Below, piece by piece: positions 1 to 57,600 of a stretch of DNA of 64,000 bases. Positions within the stretch are counted from its first letter, which is position 1; each line of letters opens with the position of its first letter. The notes under the pieces are model-generated. The model worked only from the letters and a program-made list of their open reading frames with translations, made no database searches and was not told where the DNA came from. Origin of the DNA: Marsupella aquatica (Eukaryota; Plantae; Marchantiophyta); NCBI GenBank assembly GCA_973895155.1, contig OZ316898.1:5319079-5383078 (forward strand), in the 5' to 3' direction. Position numbers and translations under genes: made by a program.

Positions 1-2397
1 GGCAATCTGTCTTCTCTGGCAACATTACAGATGAATGACTGTAACCAGCTTAGAAGTCTGCCCGATTCCTTTGGGCGCCTCACGTCTTTGACGAGCTTCG
101 TAATCGGAAGGTGCGAAATGCTAGATACGGTGCCGAAAACGTTCGGAGATCTCAAGGCTCTTACAAAATTAGTGATAACGAGGGCCAAACGCCTGAAGGC
201 CCTACCCGAAAGCTTTGGCAACTTATCTGCTCTCACATATTTGCGTCTCGAAGGTTGTGAGATTCTTGGAAGTCTGCCTGCGAGCTTTGGCAACTTATCT
301 GCTCTCACATATTTGCGTCTCGAAGGTTGTGAGATTCTTGGAAGTCTGCCTGCGAGCTTTGGTATGCTCTCGTCTTTGGAAGAACTTGGCTTGGTTTGGG
401 TGAACCGGCTAGATACGGTGCCGGAAACGTTCGGAGATCTCAAGGCTCTTAGAATTTTAGAGATAACGGACGCTAAACGCCTGAACTCCCTACCCGAAAG
501 CTTTGGCAACTTATCTGCTCTCACATATTTGCGTCTCGTTTGTTGTGAGATTCTTGAAAGTCTGCCTGCGAGCTTTGGTATGCTCTCGTCTTTGGAATCA
601 CTTGAGTTGCATTGGGTGGAGCGGCTAGATACGGTGCCAGAAACGTTAGGAGATCTCAAGGCTCTTAAAAGATTAGTGATACAGGGGGCTAAGCGCCTGA
701 AGTCCCTACCCGAAAGCTTTGGCAACTTATCTGCTCTCACACATTTTTCTCTCGAAGATTGTGAGATTCTTGAAAGTCTGCCTGCGAGCTTTGGTATGCT
801 CTCGTCTTTGGAAGAACTTGAGCTGCGTGAGCTGGAGCGGCTAGATACGGTGCCAGAAACGTTGGGAGATCTCAAGGCTCTTAAAAGATTAGTGATAGAG
901 GAGGCTAAGCGCCTGAAGTCCCTACCCGAAAGCTTTGGCAACTTATCTGCTCTCACATATTTGCGTGTCGACGGTTGTGAGAATCTTGATACGGTGCCGG
1001 AAACGTTCGGAGATCTCAAGGCTCTTAAAAATTTAGAGATAACGAAGGCTAAACGCCTGAAGTCCCTACCCGAAAGCTTTGGCAACTTATCTGCTCTCAC
1101 ATATTTGTGGCTCGAAGGTTGTAAGATTCTTGAAAGTCTGCCTGCGAGCTTTGGTCTGCTCTCGTCTTTGGAAGAACTTAAGTTGCATTGGGTGGAGCGG
1201 CTAGATACGGTGCCGGAATCGCTTGGAGATCTCAAGGCCCTTATAAGTTTAGAGATAACGGAGGCTAAGTGCCTGAAGGCCTTACCCGAAAGCTTTGGCA
1301 ACTTATCTGCTCTCACATACTTGCGTCTCCAAGGTTGTGACAGTCTTAAAATATTGCCGACGAGTTTCGGGAATCTCTCTTCGTTAGTAAGACTAGAACT
1401 CGATTCCTGGGACCAGGTGCTGCTGGAGAATTGGGGTCATCTCAAGGCTCTGAAAACATTCGTACTCTGGTGCGAATATCAGGAGGTGCTACCCGACAGT
1501 TTGGGGACCCTCTCTTCACTGACAACGTTTGAGATCAAGGGGGGAAGGTTGCGGACCCTCCCGAGAACCATAGGACAGCTTCACTCACTGACGACACTGA
1601 AGATTGTGGGGAGCAGCCTAAGCAGTATACCCGACGAACTCCGTAACCTGTCATCTCTAGAAATTCTGTTGCTTAAATCTTGTAACAGGATAGAGACCCT
1701 TCCGGACGGGTTATGGCGCATTTCCTCGTTGAGACTAGTAATACTTGATGATTGCCCAAAATTGAAGAATCTACCAGATAGTCAGGGAGATGACTCTGCA
1801 CCTCGTGAAGACAGAAGTATCGAGACAAGGAGAACAGAACGGGGGCGGTCCTCCCACAACGCTTCTGCGTACGCGGGGAGGATTTGCCTATTTGTGGCTG
1901 GCTGTCCATTCCTCAGTGATCGGGAACTGCGAAGATTGGGCTGGATTGAGTTTCAACGCGGAATAATTGATCATCTTATATTTAGAAAGGGTCTTGAGGT
2001 TTACACTAATGAGTGTTGGGGGGGAACGTGGTACCAGAGACAAGGGCCTCTCTTAGATCAGTACATTAAGTGGTACCAGAGACAACTGCTTTTTAGAATG
2101 GTACCCATTGTGCCTCTAAAGCCGCGCAACGAAGTTCGAACTCTCCTAACGAAGGTCGTGGAAAAAACAAAGCAGAAATCAGCGGAAATCGTTATTTTGT
2201 TTGTTTGTTTTGGTTTTTGGTTGGCCTTGAAACGGAAAGCTCACCCATCCACACAGGATGGACGATTGACTCAGGAGCATGCACCTCTGTACGGTAACCC
2301 ACAAGGGGGGGTCCATACCCAGGACCAGGAGGTAGAGAGGATTGGACCAGGTATGGACCATGAGGGAGAGAGGGTTGGACCAGAGCCCAAAGCATAG
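1..2397 (+). CDS. NLR copy 1, LRR/C-terminal part (5' part lies outside the window); paralog of the hydrolase-NLR at 7429-14521
   Basis: Frame is open from base 1 (GNLSSLATLQM...). It contains 24-aa plant-type LRRs (LxxLPxSFGxLxxLxxLxL). Nucleotides 1 onward align with 11681 onward. The last ~65 codons read into a SINE, so the true 3' end may be spliced. Confidence 0.85.
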   Translation, partial: GNLSSLATLQMNDCNQLRSLPDSFGRLTSLTSFVIGRCEMLDTVPKTFGDLKALTKLVITRAKRLKALPESFGNLSALTYLRLEGCEILGSLPASFGNLSALTYLRLEGCEILGSLPASFGMLSSLEELGLVWVNRLDTVPETFGDLKALRILEITDAKRLNSLPESFGNLSALTYLRLVCCEILESLPASFGMLSSLESLELHWVERLDTVPETLGDLKALKRLVIQGAKRLKSLPESFGNLSALTHFSLEDCEILESLPASFGMLSSLEELELRELERLDTVPETLGDLKALKRLVIEEAKRLKSLPESFGNLSALTYLRVDGCENLDTVPETFGDLKALKNLEITKAKRLKSLPESFGNLSALTYLWLEGCKILESLPASFGLLSSLEELKLHWVERLDTVPESLGDLKALISLEITEAKCLKALPESFGNLSALTYLRLQGCDSLKILPTSFGNLSSLVRLELDSWDQVLLENWGHLKALKTFVLWCEYQEVLPDSLGTLSSLTTFEIKGGRLRTLPRTIGQLHSLTTLKIVGSSLSSIPDELRNLSSLEILLLKSCNRIETLPDGLWRISSLRLVILDDCPKLKNLPDSQGDDSAPREDRSIETRRTERGRSSHNASAYAGRICLFVAGCPFLSDRELRRLGWIEFQRGIIDHLIFRKGLEVYTNECWGGTWYQRQGPLLDQYIKWYQRQLLFRMVPIVPLKPRNEVRTLLTKVVEKTKQKSAEIVILFVCFGFWLALKRKAHPSTQDGRLTQEHAPLYGNPQGGVHTQDQEVERIGPGMDHEGERVGPEPKA
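121..1344 (+). repeat. LRR-encoding tandem repeat (72-nt LRR, 216-nt triplet) in NLR copy 1
   Basis: The CT(A/T)GATACGGTG anchor occurs at 121, 409, 625, 841, 985 and 1201, giving spacings of 288/216/216/144/216. Confidence 0.95.
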
Positions 2398-2739
2398 ACT
2401 GTTGACTCCGGAGCATGCACCTCTGTATGGTAGCCCACAAGGGAGGTCCATACCCAGGACCAGGAGGGAGAGAAGGTTGGACGAGAGCCCATGCACCTCT
2501 GTATGGTAGCCCACAAGGGAGGTCCATACCGAGGACCAGCAGGGAGAGAGGGTTGGACGAGAGCCCAAAGCGGATCAGCCAGGCTGAGGTGAAACCAGAG
2601 AAACCAGTACTCCCACCACTATACCCGGCCCACACACACACTCACCCTCCACAACCCTTGCACGTGAAGGGGGGATTGAACTTGGGACCTCTAGATACTA
2701 GGTTCATCCCCTGGCCAACTGACCACAACCAGATGGTTC
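2192..2739 (-). mobile_element. tRNA-derived SINE, copy A (internal ~75-bp units amplified)
   Basis: The minus-strand head reads GAACCATCTGGTTGTGGTCAGTTGG...GGTCCCAAGTTCAATCCCCC, with A-box-like and B-box-like motifs. It has an A-rich (AAAC)n tail. Homologs lie at ~14474, ~23311, ~31621 and ~62041. Confidence 0.7.
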
Positions 2740-4069
2740 ACAATTTGGGTCTTGTGTAACCATATGTTCGGCTTTCTATCTGACTAACAAAGCGCAATCA
2801 GATGCTACTCCCTATGTTTTGACACTGGGCCTATTGTCTAGAGTGAAGCCACATATTGTCTAGACTGGAGCCTCATATTGTCTAGACTGGAGCCTCTAGA
2901 CCAAGGCGCTTGAATTGAGGATGCAGACAAAAAACAGTAATGGGGACAAAGATGAAGATGAAATAACATGTAATCCTTGTTTCTCTTAGGTGTTTTTCTC
3001 CTCGTCTCTTTTGAACGGGTAATCAGGCTAGTCAGTATAGGGAACAGATTGGAAACTGGTCATGTGTGTTGACTTCAACTAGCATGAACAAAGGTAGCTA
3101 AACACCACCGTTCCAGTGTGCAGTGCCTGCTGTTAATAGTACTCTAGCTCATTCCATGATGGGTATTGTGGTCATCAAGCAATTCTAGTTACAAGCTCCT
3201 GGGCAGCTAACCAAGAGAGCCCAGCTCAAAGTTTCTTCAATTTTGAAAGGAATGCTTTTATAAGGCGTCTGTCATGAGAGCACCATTTTTTAGAAAGCTG
3301 CAGAATTAGTAATATTTTGTTTCTATTTGGTCATAAACTGGCATCTCTCTCCCCATAGCTCAATGAACATTACTATTGTCATATAGAGGTTACATAAACT
3401 AGAAAGAGAAAGTCTCCTCAGTGGTTTCAGGACAAGCAATGGCGGTGTTGAGTTTGAACATTACAGGCTGCAACGCTCTCCACACAACTTGAAAACACTC
3501 TCTCGTGCATCGAGCATCACAGATTCTTTTTCATATCACACATCTTTCAAGGAAGATTCATTGGCAGGATGCTTCACATACAGAAAAAATTTTACAAGAC
3601 AGAATAATGCCTACAAATGTAGAATGGTGCCTCCACTCTATTATGAAGGTATGAAGGTGACGGACTCCGACTGCTGTGGAGAGAGCACCAGTCGCAGTGG
3701 TGACTATAAACGAAGGTTTGCAAAGATTCCTCCAGCATTGTGATTAACTGCAGTACCAGCTGTGCGAGACCAATGGGTTGAAACAGATCTCTGTTTGAGT
3801 CTCTTTCCTTTGGGAGTGCTGGAATAACATTCAGGCTGCTTATGTTTGGCTCCAAATTTCTCAAAATCTGTCGTGGGCCTTATGGAGGATGGGACTAGCT
3901 TTGCCGGGCGTCACTCTGCTAAATCTCCCAGCCTGTATTCTACTCCAGCAAAGTCTCAGCCTTTCAGAAGTATCCACCCCAAAAGAACTCAAGCTCCGTT
4001 CTGGTACCCAAGTCCCACTTTCATAAGCTTGAGCCTCAGATCAAAATTTTGATGGTGGAAACATGGTCC

Positions 4070-4660
4070 TCATGGACAAATCTCAGTCTCGGAAACGAGG
4101 AGGCAAAGCACAGACGAGTAGCTCAGCATTGGATACTGAAACGAATTCAGAAAATGAGCATACTGGGCCAACGCCGTTTCTCGATTTGGAACTTCATCAG
4201 ATAGAAAATCGTACGGAGTAACTTTGCCGGTGTCAACTAGAGGAAACCACTTGTAACCAGGTCTTTCAGGTAGTGAAACCGTCACAGGCAAATAAAGGGA
4301 ATTGAAGGCAACATAATGTTCCTTAATGTGAGAGTCAACCTGCGTGTCTAGACAGGGATGTTAGCTCGAGAAACGATTTGAAATGAATTGCAGATAAACG
4401 AAACGACACCCGTATAGGTCAATAGGTTATTTGTTTTGAACCTGCCGATATGGACGACTGTGGCCTTCTCCTCATTTGCAAGATTACAAAGCATTAACAC
4501 CATTTACAAAATTTTGACAGATCCTAAACGTCAGATGAGCGAAATGTCATAGGGAGAGCAATACTGGTGAAACAGCTACAAATCTACCCTAAATCTCCGA
4601 CCAGTCAGGCGCCGTTCCGCAGTCGGGAATTCTCCTAGCCTTAGTGCTTCACATTGACTG
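4070..4660 (-). pseudogene. Duplicated, decayed 3' end (last two exons) of isoamylase ISA1
   Basis: The last exon (4070-4339) is nearly identical to 16270-16539. The penultimate-exon copy lacks ~28 nt (AGGTTTGGTGTCAC...CTCTAGA) relative to 16820-16850. Homology stops at ~4832 versus ~17054, and no upstream exons are present. Confidence 0.88.
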
Positions 4661-5721: not shown

Positions 5722-5877
5722 TAGATGGTTTTCATCCAGCACTTCGTCGGACGGAGCTTTGTGCACACTACTGTGTTGAATTTCAGTCTCTGCCCTCCGG
5801 TTATATGACTGTAGATGGTTCTTATCCAGGACTTCGTCGGACGGAGTCACTACAGTGTTTTATTTCAGTCTGTGCCC
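5722..5877 (+). repeat. ~90-bp direct duplication upstream of the NLR
   Basis: TAGATGGTT..ATCCAG(C/G)ACTTCGTCGGACGGAG...TTTCAGTCT(C/G)TGCCCT occurs twice. Confidence 0.7.
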
Positions 5878-7428
5878 TTTGTTTGAATGAACCGAGCTGT
5901 GTTTTGTGCATTTGTGTGAACTAGAGGAGTTCATGAATAGGGCGGGCGCCGTTGGTAGCCAGGGCTAATTTTTTATTTGCTCCACATTCCGACTCAGGTT
6001 CCTCGTCCTCGAGGAAGAAGAGCAGAGCAGAGCAGAAGAGAGCAGCTTGTTTTCTTCTGGGAACTTCTACAATGTTTCAGTCGTGCTTGGCAATCGGGGA
6101 GGAGGGATTTTTTGGCAGACGTGTTTTGCTTCAGTTGATTTCATCATACACGTACACGAACGGTGTGAAGCCTTCGGGACTGGGTGTGCAAGTTGCAAAG
6201 CATTTCGGTCGATTCTTCCTTTGAAGAGCTAATCCCCAGAGAGTCCTTGGACTTGAGCCTGGTCTTCGGTCACTCTGGAACAGTTTGTGCTGCGGAAACT
6301 CGTCGTAGGAAAGGTCTTCCACCTTACCGGCTTTCCTCGTGCACATCGTCGTGCATGCTATGTGAGTTTAGGGATTAAGGTTGACCCGCGCTTCAATGTT
6401 TACACATCTGCTGCCGATCTCTCGTGGTGACTGACATGATTTCTTCAATGGTCGATTTCCTTGGTTAACTTGTTCCCCATATCCGCGCTCTTTTCTCTTG
6501 GTTGAGCAAGGTGAGCAGGAGAGGAGGGGAGGGAAGTCTAGCAACCATTGGTTACGTTGCTCGAATGTATTTCAATTGCCCCTTGCTTCCGGGGTGGGAG
6601 GGATCTTTTGATCGATGAGCTGTTAATTCTCCATTCCATTAGGCACTAATTTCTGAATTGCTGTTTGAATTCCCTGCAGGTTGCAGTCCGAGTTTATTTG
6701 ACTGCTGCTCAGACGCAGTCCAGCACCAAGGGCGGCCAAGGTGAATACACTAGAAGCCCATGTGGGCGGATGTAATTCACCTTGGTATCCCATAGTCGGA
6801 TCCTGTAGCTGATGGCTCCGTCCTTCCCCAAAGGTATGTTGTTCAGGGGCTCCAACTTGAAGCAACAGCAGAATTCTGCATTGGTCGCTCATCTACAGAA
6901 TCTTCACAAGCACTAAGAGATTCAAAATAGATGGTTGTCATGTATTCCGAAGTTAAAGGGTTATCTCAAAGTAATCTTCAATTGAATGTACTGCTGGACC
7001 TGCTTCCTGTTTGTTTTACTTTTGGGGACTCTTACGGCCTGTAGAGCATGTCGATAAATCTTTCAGGGCTCCCTCACGGTTGATGATGTAGGCACAGTGA
7101 CAGTCTACAGGGATTGGTTGGAATTGAAGTGCACAATGCTACTGGGATTCCTTCTGTGAACCTCTTCTTTGTGTGCCTCTTGAGAACAAAACCTTGTGCG
7201 TTGAAGAATGTCCCAAGCACTGGTTTGTTTGACTGCCGTGCCATTTTTGTTGCTGACCATTCCGTGGATTGTTAAAAAGTGGCAGGTTTTATTAGTCGGC
7301 TAGGTCCATTTCGGTCTTCCTGGGAGAGACCGACATCCCGGAGCTTCCTGCAAGGTTTTGTAGTGTTTCTGCCGTTGTGATTCACTTGGACCTAAGAGAT
7401 ACTTCACGATCTTCTGAAATCTCGAGCA

Positions 7429-10400
7429 ATGTCGACCTTACATGTGGGTTCTGGCTCCTCTTCAGACGCTCCATTCGCATGTGGATCTCGAAGTCCTCGT
7501 AAGGTAGTCTCAGTCCAGACCACGAGAGTGATATCGCCCGCTGTTGGCGTGGTAGACCACCTGCAGTGACGTTTCCGGCAATGAGCAAACTTGGCCGCAA
7601 AATTTGTATAAAATCACAATGATTTTCATGACTTGTTGACAGTAATTTTGCTGTTGGGATACAGATTATTTTGGTGCATATGTAATTGCACGTACTGATG
7701 TTGCTCTTTGCTTTTCTTAGGTGAATGAATCTGTCTACAAATTCGACAGGCCGCAAGACACTCCTACTTTGCAAATTCTGTTTTTTCATGGACTCCAATT
7801 TGATGATTCTTTGGAAACTCATGTCCGTAATTGGGAAAGTAGAGACAGGTCTCTCATCTGGCCTGAAAAGTGGTTGGTTGAAGATTTTCCCACTGCCGAT
7901 ATCCTGTACATTTCCTATGATGGATTGGTAAAAAAAGGATCCCACTTGAATGAAAGTCTGGGGATGTACATTATTGCCGAAAATTTGATGTCTGACCTAA
8001 TTCAAGCGGGTGTTGGTCAAATTTGGAACTGTCCGGTCATAATGGTTGGGCATTGCTTTGGTGGTATGGTCATCAAAGAGCTATGTTTGCACGCTCATAA
8101 AGCGCGGAGCGATCCCACCAAACGCAAAATGTTTCTTGACAATGTGAGAGGAATATTTAATTACAGTACTCCTCATCATGGGAGTGACATTTTCGAGAGA
8201 GTTGGAGATATGAAACACCCTTTGTGGTCATACTTTCGAGTTTTGAGCACAGAAGGAGCACGACTTAATCACGAGTTCGATCATTTGTGCAAATTACATG
8301 GATGGATAATCCGTGGTATTGGAGCTGGTCTCCGTGTTCCATCGGTACACATACTTTCATCCCCAGCTTTGTCTACGCTCACTGGCTATTTTTCTGTAGA
8401 CTGAGTAAAATTGTGTGAACGTCAACTCAATGAAGAGCATCTTGAAACTGTGCTGACATAGTGTGTATTCCGTAAGTGGGCGGCACCGTGAGTCAGAGTT
8501 TTTGAAAATGCTTATATCCTCTTTAGTCTAATGCGGGTTAGGCATATAATCTTGTACAATAGAGTTGTGTGTAGTCATCGACCTTTTTCAAAGATAAGCA
8601 GAATTACCTGTTCCATTTATTTGCTTTTTCATCTAGATTGTTACTATCTTAACAAGCTTTTTGTCAAGGATTTTATTCTGCAAGAAGCCATGTAACTTAG
8701 GGATATAATGGAGCGTACTCCTGGTGTGTAGGGCCGGTTCAAAGGTCTGCTTCTAGTCAAGGAGTCATCTGCAAGAGGAGGGGAGTCTTTCAGTGTGAGG
8801 GAAGCCGACCACTTTGCGATTTGCAAACCAGAAAGTAAAACTTCAAGTGGCTACTATGAGCTCAAGGAACTCCTTCGCAGCATTCACAGTAGCATTCGAA
8901 AGGTAATTTGTTTCTTCCTACTTTGAGGTCACATGATCAGCCTGCTTTGGTTGGATCGTAATAATTTTTATTATAACTGTTTGTGCATAATGTTACCAAA
9001 GCTTTACAGGCGGTGTAGCAAGCTCTGTCTAAACGCGGCTACGTATCCATCGATTCCTGCGAGAGCACTTATTGCGGATGGATGGTACTTGCGGTGTATA
9101 TCCTACGTGAAGATTCAGTCTCTAGTGTCCAATAACCCCTCGTTGCCTGAGTTTATCTGTGGAAACCTCCTGGTTTTGCATAAAAGACAGCATACAGTTA
9201 GGACACAGTCATTGCGATACCATTGCAAATCATGTGAAATAGGTACGACCATCAGCAATGACTTATGTCTCGAACGGTAAGACAACGAGTACTGGACGTC
9301 CTAAGCATTCCCAGATAGGACTCAGTCCGGTCGATTTGATTGATAGAGGAGATAGGACCCGAGGATCATCCCTAGCGGTCGCAGACTGGAACCAAGCGAC
9401 AAGAAACCTGTGTCACTCAATGCACTCGGCGTCATTCCATCGACTGTGATATATGCCTGATCAGCCTCAGTATAAAGTCTGCATACACTGTCAATCGCTG
9501 GAAAAAACTGGGAAACGACAGCATCGATCTAAATTGACAAATAAAATTAGGAGATGACTGAGCGGAAGATAGTGCTAGAGTAGTTGAGCATGCCAGCGAC
9601 TAGATTACAACCATGGAAACTCGGCAAAGCTATTGCCATCCTGATAAATATCTCACAAATGTGGTCATTTTAGGAGCAGTTCCCTGCACGTGCTGGGATC
9701 GATGTGGTCATTCTCTTCTTTAAATTAGCGACTGTGGAGATTCAATAAGTATCCTCACTTCAATTTCCCATTGTCTGATGTTGATATATCGGTTTCATCT
9801 TTGCAGGCAACGAGGCTTATTCATGGACTCCCGACTTATCCTACCGATTTGGAAAGGCGTTGGCACGAGGTTCAAGTAAAGCTAGCACAAGCGCCAGTAG
9901 TAGGCATCGTTGGCATGGGCGGAATCGGGAAAACAACTATTGCTAAGGAACTATACAACAACATCTCTAGAAATTTTGAATATGCGTGTTTTACTGAAAC
10001 TGTCACAGGCATCCAGAAGCACGAGGTAGAGAAGCAGATACTCGGAAATTTTCATCGCCGTGGGACTAGGGTCGAGAAAAATCAGATTGAGTGGTCTGAC
10101 CTGGAGAAGACAAAGACACTGATCGTCTTGGATGGTGTGGATCATAAACAAATCATACCTTTGCCCGATTTGGATTTCTTTGGGGAAGGGAGCCGTTTGA
10201 TCATTACAAGTCGTGATCAAGGCGTTTTGGATGTTTTTGCAAACCGTGTCATTTACGACGTTGAGTTTCTCATCGACGACGAGGCAAAGAAGCTCTTCTG
10301 CCGGCATACATTTGGGGAAGACGGAATTCCAGACCATCTCTTACAGGCAAATCATCACTTGAATGAAAATGTGGAGGGAGTGGTAAAGAAATGCGGCGGG

Positions 10401-13400
10401 CTACCATTGACGTTGGAAGTAACGGGGTGCTATCTCAGACGTCACATGACTAACGCTAATGTGTGGAAGCAGACAATAGAGAAGCTAGGAAAGGCGCAAT
10501 CTGTTAATGGGCTTCGGGATGACAGAGTGTGGTCTTCCTTGAAAGTGAGCTATGATGGTCTTGATAGTGACCTACAAGGCATGTTCGTCGAAGCCGGGAC
10601 GTATTTCTTTGGGCAACGTGTACAGCAAGCCCTCGCAGCTTGGAGCACTGCTTATGGAAATTCAGATGCAGCCTGGGCTATCTTGCTCAGTACATCCATG
10701 GTGAAGGAAATAGACAGGAGGAAACTGTGGAATTGGCCCGATGACAAGATTGAGCCATGGGACGACGGCAAGGTGATATGGGTGCACGAGCACCTGCGTG
10801 ATCTGGCCAATAATCTCTCGACGGGGGCGACAGTATCGATGTGTGTGGGAGGGGGTTGCGCAGAAGTGGATCTTCTCAATGTTGTAAGTACAAACCAGAG
10901 ACTTCGTGACAAAATAGAGCCGGTTTTATTAATGAGCAATTGAAAGCAATGAATGTCAACATTTTGGAGAGTACACTCAGCTGCATTATATTTTCATCTC
11001 GACAATTGTTTCTTTTACAAGATTCAAGGACCTTTTGCGCTTTGGTAGTTTAGAACGGAAATTCAGTGGTTTTATCCGTGCTTACTTATGGCGCAGAATC
11101 CAGTTACATGACAATTGATACTCCTCCGTTTTCACTCAGTAGTTGTATTTTTCGGAAAACGCTTATTTGTGATTTCACGTGTCATCAGGTGAAATCCGAG
11201 ACAAAACACTTGCGGATAGTAGGCGGTTTGGCTATGCTAGGACCAACGAAGATTCGGTTAGAAATGCTGGATAAGCTGGAAGAATTGAAATATTTGGAGC
11301 TGCATTATGTTCCGCCTGAAGGGCTGAGCACGAACCTTCCAAAGAAGCTTTCCTTACTGATATGGAAATATCATTATGAAGGGGATTCCCTGCCGATCAG
11401 TCTGAAGGGAATGAACAATTTGGCTGTACTAGAACTCTCAGGGTGCACAATTTCGGAGGAATCTATTGACACATTGGGAACATTAACCAACCTGCGGACT
11501 CTATCGCTTCAGTATATGAAAGGACTTCACCGTCTCCCAGAGAATTTGGATCGTCTGTCCCAGTTGAATCGGTTGGAATTATCGGGACTGGAAACATTGC
11601 CGCATTCGATTGGTCACCTCCGGGCCCTGGAACATTTGGTGTTAGACTGTCGCAACTTTAAGTATTTGCCGGATTCTTTTGGCAATCTGTCTTCTCTGGC
11701 AACATTACAGATGAATCACTGTAACCGGCTTAGAAGTCTGCCCGACTCCTTTGGGCGACTCACGTCTTTGACAACCTTCCAAATCCAAATGTGCGAAATG
11801 CTAGATAAGGTGCCGGAAACGTTCGGAGCTCTCAAGGCTCTTAAAACATTCTGGATAACGAAGGCTAAGCGCCTGAAGGCCCTACCCGAAAGCCTTGGCA
11901 ACTTATCTGCTCTCACATATTTGTCTCTCGTAGGTTGTGAGATTCTTGAAAGTCTGCCTGCGAGCTTTGGTATGCCCTCTTCTTTGGAAGAACTTGAGTT
12001 GCGTGAGCTCGAGCGGCTAGATACGGTGCCGAAAACGTTTGGAGACCTCAAGGCACTTAAAAGATTAGTGATAGCGGATGCTAAGCGCCTGAAGTCCCTA
12101 CCCGAAAGCTTTGGCAACTTACCTGCTCTCACAGATTTGCATCTCGAAGGTTGTGAGATTCTTGAAAGTCTGCCTGCGAGCTTTGGCATGCTCTCTTCTT
12201 TGGAAGAACTTGAGTTGCGTGAGCTGGAGCGGCTAGATACGGTGCCGAAAACGTTTGGAGACCTCAAGGCACTTAAAAGATTAGTGATAGCGGATGCTAA
12301 GCGCCTGAAGTCCCTACCCGAAAGCTTTGGCAACTTACCTGCTCTCACAGATTTGCATCTCGAAGGTTGTGAGATTCTTGAAAGTCTGCCTGCGAGCTTT
12401 GGCATGCTCTCTTCTTTGGAAGAACTTGAGTTGCGTAAGCTGGAGCGGCTAGATACGGTGCCGAAAACGTTTGGAGACCTCAAGGCACTTAAAAGATTAG
12501 TGATAGCGGATGCTAAGCGCCTGAAGTCCCTACCCGAAAGCTTTGGCAACTTATATGCTCTCACAGATTTGCGTCTCAAACATTGTGAGAGTCTTGAAAG
12601 TCTGCCTGCGAGCTTTGGCATGCTTTCTTCTTTGGAAGAACTTGAGTTGCGTGAGCTGGAGCGGCTAGATACGGTGCCGAAAACGTTTGGAGACGTCAAG
12701 GCACTTAAAAGATTAGTGATAGCGGGGGCTAAGCGCCTGAAGTCCCTACCCGAAAGCTTTGGCAACTTATATGCTCTCACAGATTTGCGTCTCGAACGTT
12801 GTGAGAGTCTTGAAAGTCTGCCTGCGAGCTTTGGCATGCTCTCTTCTTTGGAAGAACTTGAGTTGCATCAGCTGGAGCGGATAGATGCGGTGCCGAAAAC
12901 GTTTGGAGACCTCAAGGCGCTTAAAAGATTAGTGATAGCGGAGGCTAAGCGCCTGAAGTCCCTACCCGAAAGCTTTGGCAACTTATATGCTCTCACAGAT
13001 TTGTGGCTCAGACGTTGTGAGAGTCTTGAAAGTCTGCCTGCGAGCTTTGGCATGCTCTCGTCTTTGGAAGAACTTGTTTTGGGTTGGGTGGAGCGGCTAG
13101 ATACGGTGCCGAAAACGTTTGGAGACCTCAAGGCACTTAAAAGATTAGTGATAGCGGAGGCTAAGCGCCTGAAGTCCCTACCCGAAAGCTTTGGCAACTT
13201 ATATGCTCTCACAGATTTGCGTCTCATACGTTGTGAGAGTCTTGAAAGTCTGCCTGCGAGCTTTGGCATGCTCTCTTCTTTGGAAGAACTTGAGTTGCGT
13301 GAGCTGGAGCGGCTAGATACGGTGCCGAAAACGTTTGGAGACCTCAAGGCACTTAAAAGATTAGTGATAGCGGATGCTAAGCGCCTGAAGTCCCTACCCG

Positions 13401-14521
13401 AAAGCTTTGGCAACTTATATGCTCTCATAGATTTGCGTCTCGAACGTTGTGAGAGTCTTGAAAGTCTGCCTGCGAGCTTTGGCATGCTCTCGTCTTTGGA
13501 AGAACTTGTTTTGGGTGCGGTGGAGCGGCTAGATACGGTGCCGGAAACGTTCGGAGATCTCAAGGCTCTTACAAAAGTAGACATAATGAGGGCCACACGC
13601 CTGAAGGCCCTACCCGAAAGCTTTGGCAACTTATCTGCTCTCAAATACTTGTGTCTCCATGGTTGTGACAGTCTTAAAAAATTGCCGACGAGTTTCGGGA
13701 ATCTCTCTTCGTTAGTAGAATTAAAGCTCAATTCCTGTGACCAGCTGCTGCTGGAGACTTTGGGTCATCTCAAGGCTCTGAAAACATTAGAATTACTTTG
13801 GTGCAATTACCAGGAGGTGCTACCCGACAGTTTGGGGACCCTCTCTTCACTGACAACGTTTGAGATGAGGGGGGAAAGGTTGCAGACCCTCCCGAGAACC
13901 ATAGGACTGCTTCACTCACTGACGACACTGAGGATTGTGGGGAGCAGCCTAAGCAGTATACCCGAAGAACTCGGTAACCTGTCATCTCTAGCTATTCTGT
14001 TGCTTCAATCTTGTCACAGGATAGAGACCCTTCCGGACGGGTTAGGGCGCATTTCCTCGCTGAGACGAGTAATACTCAATGATTGCCCGAAATTGAAGAA
14101 TGTACCAGATAGTTGGGGAGAGGACTTAGCGCCTCGTGAAGACAGAAGTATCGAGACAAGGAGAACAGAACGGGGGCAGTGCTCCCAGAACGCTTGTGCG
14201 TACCCGGAGAGGATTCGGCTATTTGTGGCTCGCTGTCCATTCCTCAGTGATCGGGAACTGCGAAGATTGGGCTGGATTGAGTTTAATCCCGGAAGTTCCG
14301 ATCATCTTCTATCTGCAAACGGTGTTCACGGTTACTCTATTATGTATCGGGGAAGGTGGTACCAGAGACAAGGGCCTCTCTCAGATCATAACGTGCCTCT
14401 AAAGCCGCGCAACGAAGTTCGAACTCTCCTAACGAAGGTCGTGGAAAAAACAAAGCAGAAATCAGCGGAAATCTTTATTTTGTTTGTTTGTTTGTTTGTT
14501 TTGGTTTTTGGTTGGCCTTGA
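7429..14521 (+). CDS. alpha/beta-hydrolase-NB-ARC-LRR immune receptor (HNL-type NLR), ~1760 aa; predicted exons 7429-7503, 7721-8344, 8732-8902, 9807-10883, 11189-14521
   Basis: All predicted introns are GT-AG and phase 0. Hydrolase motifs: FFHGL, GHCFGG, STPHHGS, DHFAICKP (SERAC1/SesB-like). NB-ARC motifs: GMGGIGKTT, LIVLDGVD, GSRLIITSRD, GGLPL, VHEHLRD. A long LRR array follows. The first exon is the least certain. Confidence 0.9.
11801..13672 (+). repeat. Eight full 216-nt LRR-triplet units plus a partial ninth
   Basis: The anchor recurs every 216 nt from 11801 to 13529. Units are nearly identical at the nucleotide level. Confidence 0.95.
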
Positions 14522-14810
14522 AACGGAAAGCTCACCCATCCACACAGGATGGACGATTGACTCAGGAGCATGCACCTCTGTATGGTAGCCCACAAGGGAG
14601 GTCCATACCCAGGACCAGGAGGGAGAGAGGGTTCGACGAGAGCCCAAAGCGGTTCAGCCAGGGCTGAGGAGAAACCAGTACTCCCACCACTATACCCGGC
14701 TCACACACACACTCACCCTCCACAACCCTTGCACGTGAAGGGGGGATTGAACTTGGGACCTCTAGATACTAGGTTCATCCCCTGGCCAACTGACCACAGC
14801 CAGATGGTTC
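14474..14810 (-). mobile_element. tRNA-derived SINE, copy B (co-duplicated with the NLR)
   Basis: Same head, body and (AAAC)n tail as copy A, without the internal amplification. Confidence 0.7.
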
Positions 14811-16269
14811 ACAATTTGGGTCTTGTGTAACAATATGATCTGCTTTCTATCTGACTCACAAAGCACAATCAGATGCTACTCCCTATGTTTAGACACTGGG
14901 CCTATTGTCTAGAGTGAAGCCGCATATTGTCTAGACTGGAGCCTCTAGACCAAGGGGCTTGAATTGAGGATGCAGATAAAAAACAATAATGGGGGCAAAG
15001 ATGAAGATGAAATAACATGTAATCCTTCTTTCAGTTAGGTGTTTTTCTCATCTCTTTTGAATGGGTAATCAGGCGGAACAGATTGAAACTGGTCATGTGT
15101 GTGGGCTTAAACTAGCATGAACAAAGGTAGCTAAACACCAGCGTTCCAGTGCGCAGTGCCTGCTGTTAATAGTACAGTAGGTCATTCCAGTGTGCAGTGC
15201 CTGCTGTTAATAGTACTCTAGGTCATTCCATGATGGGTATTATGGTCATCAAGCAATTATAGTTTCAAGCTCCTCACTGGGCATCTAACCAAGAGAGCCA
15301 AGCTCGAAGTTTCTTCAATTTTGAAACGTCCTGTTCATAGTTCTCTAGGTCATTCCATGATGGGTATATGGTCATCAAGCAATTATAGTTACAAGCTCCT
15401 GGGCAGCTAACCAAGAGAGCCAAGCTCGAAGTTTCTTCAATTTTGAAACGAATGCGTTTATATAACGTTTGTCATGGGAGCACCGTTTTGTAGAAAGCTG
15501 CAGAATTAGTACTAATTTGTTTCTATTTGGTCATAAAATGGCATCTCTCTCCCAATAGCTCAATGAACATTACTGTTGTCATATAAAGGTTACACAAACT
15601 AGAAGAGAAAGTCTCCTCAGTGGTTTCAGGACAAGCAATGGCAGTGTTGAGTTTGAAGATTACAGGTTGCAACGCTCTCCACACAGCTTGAAAACACTCT
15701 CTCATGCATCGAGCATCACAGATTCTTTTTCATACCACACATCTTTTAAGAAAGATTCATTGGCAGGATGCTTAACATACAGCAAGAAGTTTACAAGACA
15801 GAATAATGCCTACAAATGTAGAATAGTGCCTCCTCTCTATTGTGAAGGTATGAAGGTGACGGACTCCAACTGCTGTGGAGAGACCACCAGTCGCAGCCGT
15901 GACTATAAACGAAGGTTTGCAAAGTTTCCTCCAGCATTGTGATTAATTGCAGTACCAGCTGTGCGAGACCAACGGGTTGAAACAGATCTCTGTTTGAGTC
16001 TCTTTCCTTTGGGAGTGCTGGAATAACATTCAGGCTGCTTATGTTTGGCTCCAAATTTCTCAAAAATTGCCGTTGGCCTTATGGAGGATGGGACTAGCTT
16101 TATCGGGCGTCACTCTGCTAAATCTCCCAGCCTGTATTCTACTCCAGCAAAGTCTCAGCCTTTCAGAAGTATCCACCCCCAAAAGAACTCAAGCTCCGTT
16201 CTAGTACCCAAGTCCCACTTTCATAAGCTTTAGCCTCAGATCAAAATTCTGATGGTGGAAACATGCTCC

Positions 16270-19200
16270 TCATGGACAAATCTCAGTCTCGGAAACGAGG
16301 AGGAAAAGCACAGACGAGTAGCTCAGCATTGGATACTGAAACGAATTCAGAAAATGAGCATACTGGGCCAAAGCCGTTTCTCGATTTGGAACTTCATCAG
16401 ATAGAAAATCGTATGGAGTAACTTTGCTGGTGTCAACTAGAGGAAACCACTTGTAACCAGGTCTTTCAGGTAGTGAAACTGTCACAGGCAAATGGCTGGC
16501 ATTGAAGGCAACATAAAGTTCCTTACTTTGAGAGTCAACCTGCGTGTAAGACAGGGATGTTAGCTCAAGAAACGATTTGAAATGAATTGCAGATAAACGA
16601 AACGCTACCCTATAGGTGAATAGGTTGTTTGCTTGGACACGCACTCAGCTGCAGATATGGACGACGGAAAACTTCTCCTCTTTTGTGAGAGATTACAGAG
16701 CATTCGGTAACACCACTTCAAAAATGTCGAGAGATTCTGAACTCCAAATGAGCGAAATGTCATAGGGAGAGCAATACCAGTGACAAAGCTACAAATCTAC
16801 TTGTCTCCGACCAGTCAGGCAGGTTTGGTGTCACGCCGTGCCACTCTAGACGTTCCGCAGTCGGGAATTCTCCTAGCCTTAGTGCTTCACATTGGCTGGA
16901 AAATCATTCCGTCAGTACAGTTTTTTCACTGTGGACGGGACAGTAGTAAGCAGAAGAAACAACTTGAAAACTAGACTAAGTTTCTGCATCCATCTCGTTT
17001 AAATTGCTTCCTATTATGAGAAGATAACGTTCAGATTATACTCGAATTCTAAGTCATCCCTCAGAAACACTCATTCCTCTTTTGCATATTATCCGAAACT
17101 GTTCTCGAGAGCAAGTAAACGGAAATTCCTTAAGAAGAGAGGTAAGATATTCAGCTCTGCACCTTCTAAAGTTAATTAGAAGCCGGGAAAATCTGTAGAA
17201 GCCTTGGGGATCTTGACTCTTTTTGTCCCACTGAAAATAATTTATCTGAAAAGCACAAAAGCATGGTCATCTCTCGACTTACTAACAACTCAATGCTGGG
17301 TCTCTGATGAGATGCCCGTACCACGTCATCCAAACCAAACTGAAGCAATCAGGACAAACGATCTAATTTGGTCTGTTTGACACAACTTGAGGATGCTTTT
17401 CTCCACATGCAACCAATCTCAATTCGCCTTCAGGGGTACGTGTTGTCAATCTGCTTACATCGTTGTCATGACAGTACGTGTTGTTGTTCCCTCCTTTCGT
17501 ATGTCCATACTCATCGCCCATAGTTAGCATTGGCACTCCCTGCAGATCATAGAACAACCATTCCAAAATTAAACAAAGCTTGGGAATAATAGGAACCGAG
17601 GCATTTATAACTGTTTTCTTTGGCTAATTCCTTACCTGAGAAACCATTAGTGTTAACATAAAATTCCGGAGCTGTCTTTGTCTCAGCCGCTGCACTGGCA
17701 AGCTCTGGGTATATCCTTCCTGATAACCACATCCCAGATATTTGTCAGTTCGTAAGTGCTAAGGATGCCATCGAAGGTACAGGTCCGTCTTGACAAAACC
17801 AACATTCTCTTGAATCATAGTTAACATGTCTTGCGGCTTATCAATGCGCTCATAAGCCCTTGACTTCGACCTTGCACAAAGATATGTTTCCTGAAGTTTC
17901 CTGAAAATCACGTCTTCCGTCCTGGCTAAAGTGCTTTAAGAAAAGTGTTCATGAGAGCAAGCGAACTTGGTCAGTCCAAAACGCACACTCTCAGTAAAGA
18001 CAAGTAGATGGATTTGAGTACACAGATTACCTCCCCGCAATTCCAGCTATTGTTGTGGCTTTCACCATCATTATTGCCCTCTCCGTTGGCTTCATTGTGT
18101 TTCTCATTGTAAGACACCAAATCTGCCAACGTGAAGCCATCATGGGCTGTTACAAAATTGATGCTATGCCAGGGTTTCCTGCCACTTTCCTGCATGTGCG
18201 TCCAAGGCCATTGCTTCAGGATTTGCTTACTGCTGCTTAACAATGAACTAAATCTCGCAACAGCTTGCGCACCACACAGTGACATTGAATACCTGTAAGA
18301 CATTTCTAAAATCTAGCAAATCACAATTGAATTGAGGAATCCATAAAATGTCTGTACCTGATACAACTGTGGAGAGCCACATAGACATCCTGCAAATGAA
18401 CCGACCATCCCATTCGTGCCTTTTATGAACTGTCGTACTGTATCGCGAAACTGCAGGATCAAATAACCACAGCTGGAATGTCAAACAATTTACAACCCAG
18501 TACCGTCTCCTTGAATACCACGAGATTATCTCAGCAATAGTGACATGAATCTGAAAAAGACAAAACTATTCCATCTCCTGTGCCTTGGTTTATACCGCCC
18601 GAATCGTAAGAAGGTTTAAGGTCATAGATATGTACAGGGATAAGGCCCTGCTGTTTGTGATCTAGTGTACCTGTCCATTCCATTCAGACCAGACCCCCCA
18701 GTGTGGAAAACTGCCGACTTGGTACAGACCGCCTGTGTCCCACGCTTCCGCTATCAACTGCCAAAATACATCAAGGCTTGTGTCGGGTCAGGCAGGTATA
18801 GAAGTAGACCAGGCGAGGTATCGCGCCAGGCTAATCTGCCATTCAAACATCAGTACTTAGGAGATCAGAAATCTCCTTTAAACTGCACCTTTGTTTTTAA
18901 GTTGTAAAGGAAAGTTCTGGGAGGAGTGTACCTTTACTCCACGGAGAACTGGATCATTGCTCATCATGTCAATCAAGGGCGGTTCATTCAGTGGAGTTCC
19001 CGTTGTCACTGTGTCCCATTCACGCCCCTCAGTGGTGCCGTAGACATTTTCTTTGTCCCAAAGACTGCCACACAGCGGATCCTCATAATGAAACCCGGTT
19101 ACTTGGTATCAAATCTCTTCAAGTCTCCCTGTCCTTTAGTACATAAAGGACTATCAAAACTTGTTTTAAGAACTTAAGTGAACTACTGTTGCATTAGGTT

Positions 19201-54617: not shown

Positions 54618-57600
54618 ATGACAAGGAAAGCACTTTGGGTGGATGGATGGTCAACTCCAGCATGGGTTAAGCCAAGGGAGAATTTGATAACTCACTGCAG
54701 ATTTCATTCTCATGTTAGTTATTCCACGAGAGAGCGGTCTCAAGTCACTGCAAAAGGGAATGGCAGTAGGCATTTGCGTGATGCTAGTACCACTAGTGAA
54801 ACAATTGCTGTTTTAAAAGATCGTCTCCAGCGAGGCATCACTATAGACTCGTACACATATGTCGAAATTTTGCAAATATGCTTGCAACAGAAAGACCTTT
54901 CGGCAGCCAAGCAAATTCATGATTGCATCATCGAGAGTGGAATGGATAAGAATCCATATGTGGCAGTCACGCTCTTGAATGTGTATATCAAATGCGGAGG
55001 ATTGTTAGATGCACGTCGAGTTTTTGATCAACTTGAGAAGAAGAGTGTTATTACCTGGAGCGCGATGATAGCAGGATATGCTAATAGTGATTGTACTGAA
55101 TCTGTACCGGAACTTTTTAATCAAATGCTCCAAGAAGGCGTGCAGCCAAATGAGATCACATATCTGAGCATCCTGAAAGGATGTGCCAGCCCATTAGCTC
55201 TAACTTGCGGAAGAGAAATTCATGAGCGTATTCGACATGCCGGCTTTGAATCAGACGTGCGTATAGGCACTGCCCTCCTACTGATGTACGCAAAATGTGG
55301 GTGCATCACTGAGGCAAGGATAGTTTTTGAAAAGTTGACCAATCGAAATCTCATTACATGGAATATTATGATTGGAGCATATGCAGAGCGTGGTGATGGT
55401 GTGGAAGCATATCGACTGTTTCTACAAATGAGACGTGAAGGCTTTGAACCAGATGCATTTACTTATGCTAGTATTCTCAATGCATCAGCAAGTGAGGGGG
55501 CTTTGGAATGGGTGAAGGAAGTTCATAGCCATGCTAGCAAAGCGGGACTGGAATCAGATTTGCGTGTGGGCATTGCACTAGTTCACAGGTATGCACAGAG
55601 CGGCAGTATAGATGACGCCCGACTGGTTTTTGACAGAATGAGGAAACGCGATGTAGTCACATGGAATGTAATGATCGGTGCACTTGCACAACATGGATGT
55701 GGGCATGAAGCATATCGATTGTTTCTGCAAATGAGACGTGAAGGCTCCGAGCCAAATGCAATCACTTATGTGAGCATCCTGAATACATCTGCAAGTGCGG
55801 GTTCTTTGGAGTGGGTGAAGGAGGTTCATGGGCATGCTAGCAAAGCGGGACTGGATTCAGATTTGCGGGTAGGCAATGCACTGGTTCATATGTATGCAGA
55901 GAGTGGGAGTATAGATGACGCCCGATTTGTTTTTGACAGAATGGGGAAACGCAATGTAGTCACATGGACTGCAATGATCGGTGGACTTGCACAACGTGGG
56001 TGTGGGCATGAAGCATATCGACTATTTCTACAAATGAGACGTGAAGGCTTCGAGCCAAATGCAATCACTTATGTGAGCATCCTGAATGCATCTGCAAGTG
56101 AGGGGGCTTTGGCATGGGTGAAGGAAGTTCATGGGCATGCTAGACAAGCAGGACTGGATTCAGATTTGCGTGTAGGCAGTGCACTAGTTCACATGTATGC
56201 AGAGAGTGGCAGTATAGCGGACGCCCGGCTCGTTTTTGACAGAATGGGGAAACGCGATGTAGTCACATGGAATGTAATGATCGGTGCACTTGCACAACAT
56301 GGATGTGGGCATGAAGCATATCGACTGTTTCTCCAAATGCGACGTGAAGGCTTCGAGCCGAATGCAATCACTTATCTGAGCATTCTGAATGCATCTGCAA
56401 GTGCGGGTTCTTTGGCGTGGGTGAAGGCGGTTCATGATCATGCTAGCAAAGCAGGACTGCTGGAGTCAGATTTGCGCGTAGGCAATGCGCTGGTTCACAT
56501 GTATGCAGAGAGTGGCAGTATAGATGACGCACGACTTATTTTTGACAGAATGGGGAAACGCGATGTGGTCACATGGAATGTAATGATCGGTGCACTTGCA
56601 CAACATGGATGTGGGCATGAAGCATATCGACTGTTTCTGCAAATGAGACATGAAGGCTTCGAGCCAAATGCAATCACTTATGTGAGCATCCTGGATGCAT
56701 CTGCAAGTGCGGGTTCTTTGGAATGGGTGAAGGAGGTTCATGGGCATGCTAGCAAAGCGGGACTGGATTCAGATTTGCGTGTAGGCAATGCACTGGTCCA
56801 CATGTATGCAGAGAGTGGCAGTATAGATGACGCCCGACTTATTTTTGACAGAATGGGGAAACGCGATGTAGTCACATGGAATGTAATGATCGGTGCACTT
56901 GCACAACATGGATGTGGGCATGAAGCATATCGATTGTTTCTGCAAATGAGACGTGAAGGCTTCGAGCCAAATGCAATCACTTATGTGAGCATCCTGAATG
57001 CATCTGCAAGTGCGGGTTCTTTGGAGTGGGTGAAGGAGGTTCATGGGCATGCTAGCAAAGCAGGACTGGATTCAGATTTGCGTGTAGGCAGTTCACTGGT
57101 TCACTTGTATGCGGAGAGTGGCAGTATTGATGATGCCCGACTTACTTTTAACAGAATGGGGAAACGCGATGTAGTAACATGGACAGTAATGATCGGTGGA
57201 CTTGCACAACATGGATGTGGGAATGAAGCCCTGGAGCTGTTTAGAAAAATGACCTTGGAAGGTGTGAAGCCGGACGTGTATTCATTCGTGGCAGTGTTGT
57301 CAGCATGTTCTCACGGAGGCCTTGTTGATGACGGCCGTAGAGTCTTTTCAGCTATGACGCAGGATTATGGCATCGAGCCTCACATTGTGCATTATAATTG
57401 CATGGTGGATCTTCTTGGGCGGGCTGGACACTTGGAGGAAGCAAAACTCTTCATTAGTGACATGCCAGTTGAACCAGATGCAGTTACTTGGAAAGCCTTC
57501 CTTGGGGCTTGTAGAACTTACGGTAATGTGCAGTTGGGCGAACTTGCCGCTGAAGAGATTCTGAAGTTTCAACCCAATGATGCCTCTACGTATGTGCTCC

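Follow-up and report, generated by a model that had tools for sequence, protein, structure and literature searches.

In the liverwort Marsupella aquatica, a gene for a leucine-rich repeat (LRR) receptor carries a run of repeat units that share an almost invariant framework, and the question raised by this locus is how such a run arose and what diversified it. The window considered here is the whole 64,000-nt stretch of DNA that was analysed (OZ316898.1, positions 5,319,079–5,383,078). By using TRF, a tandem array with a period of 216 nt was located at 11800–13679 (8.7 copies, 93% matches, zero indels), in frame within the ORF 11066–14521 (LRR exon: 11189–14521), bearing out the position, period and frame that a preliminary description had given for 216-nt LRR triplets (11801–13672); every motif string quoted there was also found in the array. 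The unit of 72 amino acids consists of three 24-residue LRRs, designated types A, B and C. Eight near-identical units had been counted in that description; the near-identity was confirmed, whereas the number was corrected to seven, since units 0 and 8 at the edges have diverged:

11801..12016, + strand: edge unit 0, diverged, 23–34 nt differences from the core units
12017..13528, + strand: seven homogenised core units (7 × 216 nt = 21 LRRs), pairwise 1–20 nt differences
13529..13744, + strand: edge unit 8, diverged, 54–60 nt differences from the core units, its modules matching terminal modules of the paralogue

The core units showed pairwise nucleotide identities of 91–99.5% (mean 95%) and amino-acid identities of 83–99% (mean 90%) over 504 residues, and 26 columns told them apart; the closest pair, units 1 and 2, differed by 1 nt at the hypervariable codon C11. 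As had been claimed, the identity of the framework extends to synonymous sites, only 3 codons varying synonymously among the seven units. Neither TRF, which gave 216 nt only, nor the distance matrix of the units revealed a two-unit super-repeat or a longer period.

The gene carrying the array was modelled exon by exon, with searches run for each exon separately:

7721..8344, + strand: exon 1 (approximate), N-terminal alpha/beta-hydrolase domain, from tblastn with Calypogeia, Marchantia and Riccia hydrolase-NLRs
8711..8908, + strand: exon 2 (approximate), last part of the hydrolase domain with the linker, from colinear tblastn with the same homologues
9771..10883, + strand: NB-ARC exon (PF00931), upstream boundary approximate, GTAAGT donor at 10884
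10884..11188, + strand: predicted phase-0 intron of 305 nt (GTAAGT...CAG) between the NB-ARC and LRR exons
11189..14521, + strand: LRR exon through the stop codon, about 37 LRRs and a C-terminal tail, open frame

Pfam detected the NB-ARC domain (PF00931, E = 2.4e-28, 99.5 bits versus a cut-off of 23.5), whose ORF translation shows the P-loop, Walker B and GLPL motifs, and matched the LRR exon to LRR_14 at E = 1e-97; the intron at 10884–11188 is the sole consensus donor/acceptor pair that joins the two frames. For the hydrolase exons at 7721–8344 and 8711–8908, alignment with the N-terminal regions of six colinear liverwort NLRs gave 36–46% identity (E as low as 1e-53), and three of the six (P0017, P0080 and P0059) carry PF05057; no Pfam family was detected on the exon-1 hydrolase ORF alone, and the domain was assigned through homology. 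Its nucleophile-elbow motif reads G-H-C-F-G, with Cys in place of the usual Ser. The closest protein matches came from Calypogeia fissa, of which P0002 (1698 aa) is colinear with the gene (residues 296–639 with the NB-ARC exon at 56% identity, residues 649–1664 with the LRR exon at 44%), and all exons are open, including the 1110 codons of the LRR exon. With an NB-ARC domain and C-terminal LRRs connected by a predicted exon join, the gene belongs to the plant NB-ARC-LRR receptors, and the hydrolase domain that homology places upstream of NB-ARC assigns it to the bryophyte Hyd-NLR (HNL) subclass, a class described in PMC11218826. As predicted from sequence, it is an intact four-exon hydrolase-NB-ARC-LRR receptor that sits among tandemly clustered paralogues with identities of about 90%, and it would presumably function in immunity. 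A DYW-type PPR gene is also present in the window and speaks against a marchantiid origin of the DNA, as RNA editing is not known from marchantiids.

Among the core units, 14 codons vary in amino acid, 8 of which lie in the xxLxLxx motif, with 7 of these 8 at LRR positions 8, 10 and 11; the other 6 are A1 (L/V), B2 (P/Y), B14 (I/S), C12 (L/V), C15 (L/I) and C17 (T/A). When minimal nucleotide changes were counted, 19 of 30 fell within the 27 of 216 nt that make up the 9 face codons, those of positions 8, 10 and 11 (Fisher p = 9e-14), and all 6 codons with at least three amino-acid states were at one of these positions. The earlier statement that only xxLxLxx positions change was thus right about the concentration on this face and wrong about its exclusiveness, while an even spread of substitutions, which its authors had named as grounds for rejecting their reading, was looked for and is contradicted by these counts. 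Selection was assessed by counting methods only, which rest on just 3 synonymous events: pN/pS was 4.2 at positions 8, 10 and 11 versus 0.88 in codons outside xxLxLxx, and the 9 face codons had 16 amino-acid-change events where the synonymous rate would give 1.2 (Poisson p = 3e-13), whereas the remaining 63 codons had 7 replacements versus 8.3 expected, close to the neutral rate. The substitutions in the core comprised 14 transitions and 16 transversions, a mixed spectrum that is not biased towards any single base. An AlphaFold model (pLDDT 84.7) predicted a regular 24-residue solenoid with a beta-strand at LRR positions 6–10, so that positions 8 and 10 fall within the strand and position 11 immediately follows it. 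Foldseek matches to this structure were LRR solenoids only (SHOC2, Leptospira LRR proteins, FLS2 and TLRs), giving no specific functional lead.

The array could be compared with a tandem paralogue at the upstream end of the window:

1..2250, + strand: upstream tandem paralogue, 3' part of its LRR exon, same A/B/C cassette

The paralogue has about 5 units, versus seven core units here. One of its LRRs is present as an exact duplicate (B module at 217 and 289), and another, module 937, is a B/C hybrid. In unit 8 of the array, the A module was nearest to paralogue module 145, the first A module, and the B module to paralogue module 1297. The duplicated segment extends downstream, 2490–4610 matching 14569–16820 at 88–92%. 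Within-core pS (0.025–0.03) was below both the dS between gene and paralogue (0.06–0.13) and the divergence of the non-coding flank (8–12%), indicating that amplification of the array is younger than the gene duplication; paralogue comparisons across the LRR region gave dN/dS of about 1 or higher. Judged from these sequences, the different unit number, the duplicated LRR and the hybrid LRR point to in-register recombination, and the suggestion of repeat shuffling in the preliminary description is upheld in so far as such paralogue differences are what this process would give. One four-gamete incompatibility was observed within the array, involving the E at A11, carried by units 5 and 6, and the variant C module, carried by units 5 and 7; this is weak evidence for within-array recombination, as a hypervariable site could have mutated twice. 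Regarding other alleles, a large protein search with the LRR exon returned nothing above 44% identity, an exact 39-nt framework pattern had no match in JGI metagenome contigs, and the NB-ARC exon, used for protein-guided scanning of metagenomes, had none either. Copy-number differences between individuals, and the quick diversification suggested in the preliminary description, are therefore putative, and the array may have formed in one burst of duplication or may still be exchanging sequence.

Homogenised arrays were also found in other liverwort Hyd-NLRs. That of M. polymorpha (AP031354.1:30749969–30758221) consists of 17 units of 69 nt, in which all 17 variable columns fall in 8 codons and 14 of the 17 at positions 8 and 10–13 (p = 6e-11), and that of C. 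fissa of 13.3 copies of 144 nt. For M. polymorpha, a Nei-Gojobori partition (pN/pS near 1 at hypervariable codons) was dropped and column counts were used, because multi-base codon differences inflate the path-averaged synonymous count. A stretch resembling the high internal conservation (HIC) repeats of fungal NLRs was present in 36 of the 120 best protein matches. The Hyd-NLRs of M. polymorpha (P0026) and C. fissa (P0002) are like the present gene in domain order and colinearity, and in bearing homogenised arrays of LRRs whose hypervariable patches coincide with the beta-strand or follow it; their unit size differs (one LRR in Marchantia, two in Calypogeia, three here), indicating that the amplifications were independent. 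Three liverwort Hyd-NLRs with different unit sizes look like a recurrent mode of evolution rather than a one-off; a published description of homogenised Hyd-NLR arrays was not found in the literature searched. M. polymorpha is a transformable model of which 133 accessions have been collected (PMC11906373), so that its array locus lends itself to tests for unstable repeats and altered specificity.

The best overall explanation is, in our judgement, probably germline in-register amplification combined with diversifying selection on the ligand-binding face of the Hyd-NLR sensor. A three-LRR cassette of 216 nt, of which the paralogue would have about one or two copies, would have been amplified in register to seven copies by germline unequal recombination or replication slippage between repeats, and homogenisation of the units by the same recombination or slippage is probably ongoing. 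The near-identity of framework codons, including synonymous sites, would be due to this amplification and probable homogenisation, and the edge units 0 and 8 would have diverged because they escape exchange. In the B and C repeats, replacements have built up at positions 8 and 10 of the beta-strand, which face the solvent, and at the neighbouring position 11, outpacing neutral change by far, an excess that diversifying selection on the ligand-binding surface, presumably by pathogen ligands, would yield. Each unit would then be a framework with its own short face word, and new receptor surfaces may arise as the units change in number and order and the face words change too. In the core, the A repeat hardly varies at its face (a deficit short of significance, hypergeometric P about 0.1), which is not what uniform diversifying selection predicts and counts against this explanation.

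Alternatively, the face words could be old, short-tract gene conversion having carried them over from other paralogues of the cluster into a framework that is homogenised, in which case the excess at face codons would reflect family-level diversity and not mutation and selection inside the array. The C-module variant of units 5 and 7 does look tract-like (four linked changes with a linked synonymous TCG), the W-V pair at C11-C12 recurs in three C modules of the paralogue, and the A module of unit 8 is similar to the one that comes first in the latter; however, except for the common C word of module 793, the one visible paralogue has no core B/C face word, the C module of unit 5 has 8–11 differences from paralogue C modules versus 7 from core C modules, and the single difference between units 1 and 2, at hypervariable C11, looks like a new point mutation, so that we consider both the gene conversion and its account of the excess rather unlikely. 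Neutral decay, i.e. a recent amplification in a redundant or dying copy with unconstrained face positions, would agree with the near-neutral rate of codons outside positions 8, 10 and 11 (7 versus 8.3 expected) and with the dN/dS of about 1 or higher among paralogues, but relaxation alone is insufficient for face-codon replacements at about 13 times the neutral expectation, and a gene whose exons are all open and colinear with the C. fissa homologue and whose NB-ARC domain retains the P-loop, Walker B and GLPL is very improbably a decaying one.

Repeats of this kind can also mislead assembly, tandem repeats being a known source of error (PMC6868369), and units 1 and 2 are just 1 nt apart; nevertheless, a wrong array length or unit order is highly improbable for an array of only 1.9 kb, much below long-read length, which has 26 distinguishing columns and an open frame and has like arrays in independent assemblies of other liverworts. 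Least probable of all is a programmed or somatic process by which the haploid gametophyte would rearrange or hypermutate the array into clonal receptor variants. It is suggested by analogy, on the one hand with the lamprey VLRs and on the other with somatic recombination as hypothesised for the LRR exons of brown algae (PMC3341825), and the near-total limitation of the M. polymorpha changes to a few codons leaves room for targeted mutation; against it, one unit, searched in six frames on both strands of the window, revealed no orphan LRR donor cassette beyond the two genes, the mixed spectrum is unlike that of a deaminase or a diversity-generating retroelement, and germline recombination with selection is sufficient and has precedent. 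As the germline ORF is complete and donor cassettes are absent from the window outside the two genes, the remark that diversification occurs 'possibly somatically' is unsupported. A broader form, in which liverwort Hyd-NLR arrays are actively diversified by high-rate in-register recombination or codon-targeted mutation, possibly in the haploid gametophyte, is given as slim a chance as an assembly error; it remains compatible with a frozen framework and face codons differing at up to three bases, a pattern stronger in M. polymorpha, and, if true, clonal lineages would differ in their receptor surfaces.

Germline amplification with selection on the face, the preferred explanation, has parallels in several known systems. 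In fungal NLRs, repeats count as HIC from 85% amino-acid identity upwards, over 100 aa or more (PMC4986451); the present array has a mean of 90% over 504 aa, and the HIC feature of positive selection at few interaction-surface positions is matched by a pN/pS of 4.2 and 16 versus 1.2 replacements, as obtained by counting methods on a predicted strand. The likeness to fungal HIC repeats proposed earlier is therefore sustained by both the operational criterion and the excess of replacements at the predicted face. Fungal HIC NLRs (Podospora HET-E, HET-D, HET-R, NWD family) share with the gene an NLR architecture, highly internally conserved repeats, positive selection at few surface positions and, putatively here, change of repeat number with shuffling within and between paralogues (PMC4986451, PMC2873952, PMC13449251). 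Their repeats are WD40, ANK or TPR, LRRs being absent from fungal NLRs, whereas those here are LRRs; moreover, repeat instability and polymorphism are shown experimentally and in populations for fungi, whereas here we infer them. HIC NLRs, including the LRR type, were reported in plants in a 2026 survey (PMC13449251).

Combinatorial LRR cassettes in recognition molecules are likewise known from the lamprey VLRs and hypothesised as exon shuffling for brown-alga ROCO LRR genes (PMC6868369, PMC3341825). Those systems draw on donor cassettes or place each repeat in its own exon, with somatic assembly proven or proposed, whereas the array here occupies part of one exon of a gene that is complete, and the window has no donor cassettes for it. 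Unlike the incomplete germline gene flanked by LRR donors of a VLR-like system, this locus has a complete ORF, and LRR matches were inside two genes only.

The flax M and L NLRs contain LRR blocks duplicated in register, the number of which differs between alleles. The same is the case for Arabidopsis RPP5, for which PMC13449251 cites Noel et al. 1999. In both RPP5 and flax M/L the blocks are older and far less homogeneous than the seven core units.

According to PMC7468133, tomato Cf-2/Cf-5 (Hcr2) genes have near-identical tandem LRRs with copy-number variation through intragenic recombination, and their variable LRR block sets specificity (citing Dixon et al. 1996, 1998). Tandem 24-residue LRRs that are nearly identical in nucleotides, in numbers differing between homologues, are common to these genes and ours. 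Cf proteins are extracellular RLPs of a flowering plant with a unit of one or two LRRs, whereas the liverwort array has a three-LRR cassette in an NLR; lacking the extracellular receptor-like architecture of Hcr2, its protein is a cytoplasmic-type hydrolase-NB-ARC-LRR. The array gene would work like Cf-2/Cf-5, yet stands outside that family. The novelty implied for this type of array does not hold, given the precedents in Cf-2/Cf-5/Hcr2 (PMC7468133) and plant HIC NLRs (PMC13449251): the pattern is real but already known in kind from tomato, fungal and other plant receptors, and current concepts of NLR evolution are left unchanged by it. The array provides a quantified liverwort Hyd-NLR example of a sensor surface built as in Cf-2/Cf-5 and HET-E-type receptors.

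Tandem Repeats Finder detected one indel-free array at 11800–13679 (period 216 nt, 8.7 copies, 93% matches), which lies in frame within a 1151-codon ORF on the + strand (11066–14521). When cut in register from 11801, its 72-aa unit consists of three 24-aa LRRs of the form LxxLxxLxLxxCxxLxxLPxxFGx, designated A, B and C. The core units 1–7 (12017–13528) differed pairwise by 1–20 of 216 nt, with mean identities of 95% at the nucleotide level and 90% at the amino-acid level, whereas the edge units 0 and 8 differed from the core by 23–34 and 54–60 nt, respectively. The preliminary description, of which every quoted motif string was present in the array, had counted eight near-identical units; the homogenised array is real, but it comprises seven such units between two diverged edges. 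A homogeneous core with diverged edges is the layout that would be expected from unequal exchange, in which edge units are least involved. The array, for which polymorphism in unit number and order is predicted, is known from one assembly of one individual; searches retrieved no second individual or near relative. It is only 1.9 kb long, and its units are mutually distinguishable.

Across units 1–7, variation was confined to 17 codons, of which 3 changed only synonymously and 14 changed the amino acid. Numbering each LRR from its first Leu, 8 of the 14 were located at the xxLxLxx positions (5, 6, 8, 10 and 11), seven of these at positions 8, 10 or 11, and the remaining six were A1, B2, B14, C12, C15 and C17, so that the claim of change confined to the xxLxLxx face was too strong. 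Its concentration at positions 8, 10 and 11 is nevertheless extreme: these 27 nt hold 19 of the 30 minimal nucleotide changes (Fisher p = 9e-14), far from an even spread, and all codons with at least three amino-acid states are found there. Units 1 and 2 differ solely by 1 nt, in the hypervariable codon C11. For the core units, Nei-Gojobori pN/pS was 4.2 (pN 0.30) at positions 8, 10 and 11, against 0.88 (pN 0.021, pS 0.025) for codons outside xxLxLxx. With a neutral expectation scaled from just three synonymous events, the nine face codons had 16 amino-acid changes versus 1.2 expected (Poisson p = 3e-13) and the other 63 codons had 7 versus 8.3, showing that face codons evolve far above the neutral rate and that, as the rest are close to neutral, the uniform framework reflects youth or homogenisation and not visible constraint. 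The original observation is real and has strong statistical support, but two of its details were overstated.

An AlphaFold2 model of the residues encoded by 11609–13840, computed from single-sequence input (mean pLDDT 84.7, pTM 0.72), formed a regular solenoid in which every 24 residues contribute a five-residue strand and a short helix, and its Foldseek matches were LRR solenoids only. The strand spans LRR positions 6–10, where the core leucines (7 and 9) interleave with positions 8 and 10; position 11 comes immediately after the strand. By established LRR geometry, the side chains at positions 8, 10 and 11 are predicted to line the concave face.

The gene around the array was delineated from the LRR-bearing ORF (Pfam LRR_14, E 1e-97) and the following upstream feature.
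9771–10943: NB-ARC ORF (Pfam PF00931, E 2.4e-28)
Liverwort NLRs retrieved by the LRR exon were colinear with four blocks (7721–8344, 8711–8908, 9807–10850 and 11177–14278). The exons were searched one by one, not as a joined protein, and the top protein match was a 1698-aa Calypogeia fissa protein, whose identity was highest over the NB-ARC (56%), followed by the LRR (44%) and the N-terminal hydrolase portion (38%); no Marsupella aquatica protein was among the matches in the protein database search with the LRR exon. Because the PF05057 esterase family was found in 3 of 6 aligned homologues, the gene is assigned to the Hyd-NLR class of hydrolase-NB-ARC-LRR receptors, which has been described for bryophytes (PMC11218826). 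A single predicted consensus intron of phase 0 separates the NB-ARC and LRR frames (GTAAGT at 10884, CAG at 11188), placing the LRR exon at 11189–14521. In the ORF translation of the hydrolase exon (7721–8404, + strand), the nucleophile elbow reads G-H-C-F-G, with Cys in place of the Ser usual in alpha/beta-hydrolases.

An upstream paralogue enters the window part-way through its LRR exon (1–2250). It has the same flanking modules and A/B/C grammar, and its array has only ~5 units, more diverged than the core units. One of its B modules is duplicated exactly (modules 217 and 289), its module at 937 is a B/C hybrid, and its A faces are highly variable; such differences are the products expected from in-register recombination between repeats, while the case for exchange inside the array itself is thin. 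The paralogue unit nearest to the core units is 649–864 (9% nucleotide difference), and the A module of unit 8 is nearest to the paralogue's first A module, not its last. The duplicated segment extends past both genes, at least 2 kb downstream (2490–4610 versus 14569–16820, 88–92% identity); a 76-nt direct repeat lies within it at 2414–2567, and the NLR cluster has a repeat period of ~12 kb. As pS within the core (~0.025–0.03) is below dS between gene and paralogue (0.06–0.13), the core amplification or last homogenisation is several-fold younger than the gene duplication.

Somatic recombination has been proposed for LRR cassettes in brown algae (PMC3341825), and somatic change had also been suggested for the present array. 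This is very improbable here: the germline NLR gene is complete, a six-frame search of the window with one unit gave LRR matches only inside the two NLR genes, leaving no donor cassettes in the window, and the core substitution spectrum is mixed (14 transitions, 16 transversions), with no single-base bias seen. The somatic part of the preliminary interpretation is thus unsupported; the remainder was right in outline.

A second homogenised repeat array of the window belongs to an RNA-editing-type protein.
54618–58094, + strand: DYW-type PLS pentatricopeptide-repeat (PPR) ORF, intronless, 1158 aa, ending in the DYW motif
55404–57229, + strand: PPR repeat array, six near-identical 303-nt (101-aa) units, ~90% identity
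The 101-aa units are presumably P-L-S triplets. Marchantiids are not known to have RNA editing, and this DYW-type gene, together with the top match to C. fissa, points to a liverwort outside the marchantiids.

Among the best 120 protein matches, a sample skewed to repetitive LRRs, 36 contained a segment of 100 aa or more whose identity to the segment one period away was 85% or higher, and these included flowering plants, conifers, mosses and liverworts. Two further liverwort Hyd-NLR loci were examined at the nucleotide level. The Marchantia polymorpha gene, whose source name is 'protein SERAC1', has 18 copies of 69 nt (5746–7003 of locus L001, AP031354.1:30749969-30758221). In 17 units, all 17 variable nucleotide columns were confined to 8 codons, with 14 of the columns at positions 8 and 10–13 (p = 6e-11), and zero framework codons varied, synonymous changes included; this array is more extreme than that of Marsupella aquatica, and its host is a tractable model. 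The array of the C. fissa gene comprises 13.3 copies of 144 nt, with variation likewise at and just after the strands. Because a unit consists of one LRR in M. polymorpha, two in C. fissa and three in Marsupella aquatica, the three liverwort arrays are independent amplifications. Two C. fissa hydrolase-NLRs (P0056 and P0080) each gave two alignments to the NB-ARC exon (residues ~290–600 and 900–1220), and so carry two NB-ARC domains per protein.

No description of homogenised LRR arrays in Hyd-NLRs was found in the literature cited here, and the new element is the case itself, a liverwort Hyd-NLR with a cassette of three LRRs, together with its quantification; the wider novelty implied earlier was overstated. 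In tomato, the LRR-coding repeats of Cf-2 are tandem and nearly identical, and the Hcr2 family evolved by intragenic recombination altering LRR number (PMC7468133). In fungi, NLRs whose WD40, ANK or TPR repeats are highly conserved undergo concerted evolution and repeat shuffling, with positive selection at few surface positions (PMC4986451, PMC2873952), and a 2026 survey covering LRRs concluded that HIC NLRs occur in plants, animals and bacteria too (PMC13449251). Given these precedents, and with the array reaching the 85% identity over 100 aa used for HIC repeats of fungal NLRs (PMC4986451), the fungal analogy is sound and the phenomenon is of a known kind.
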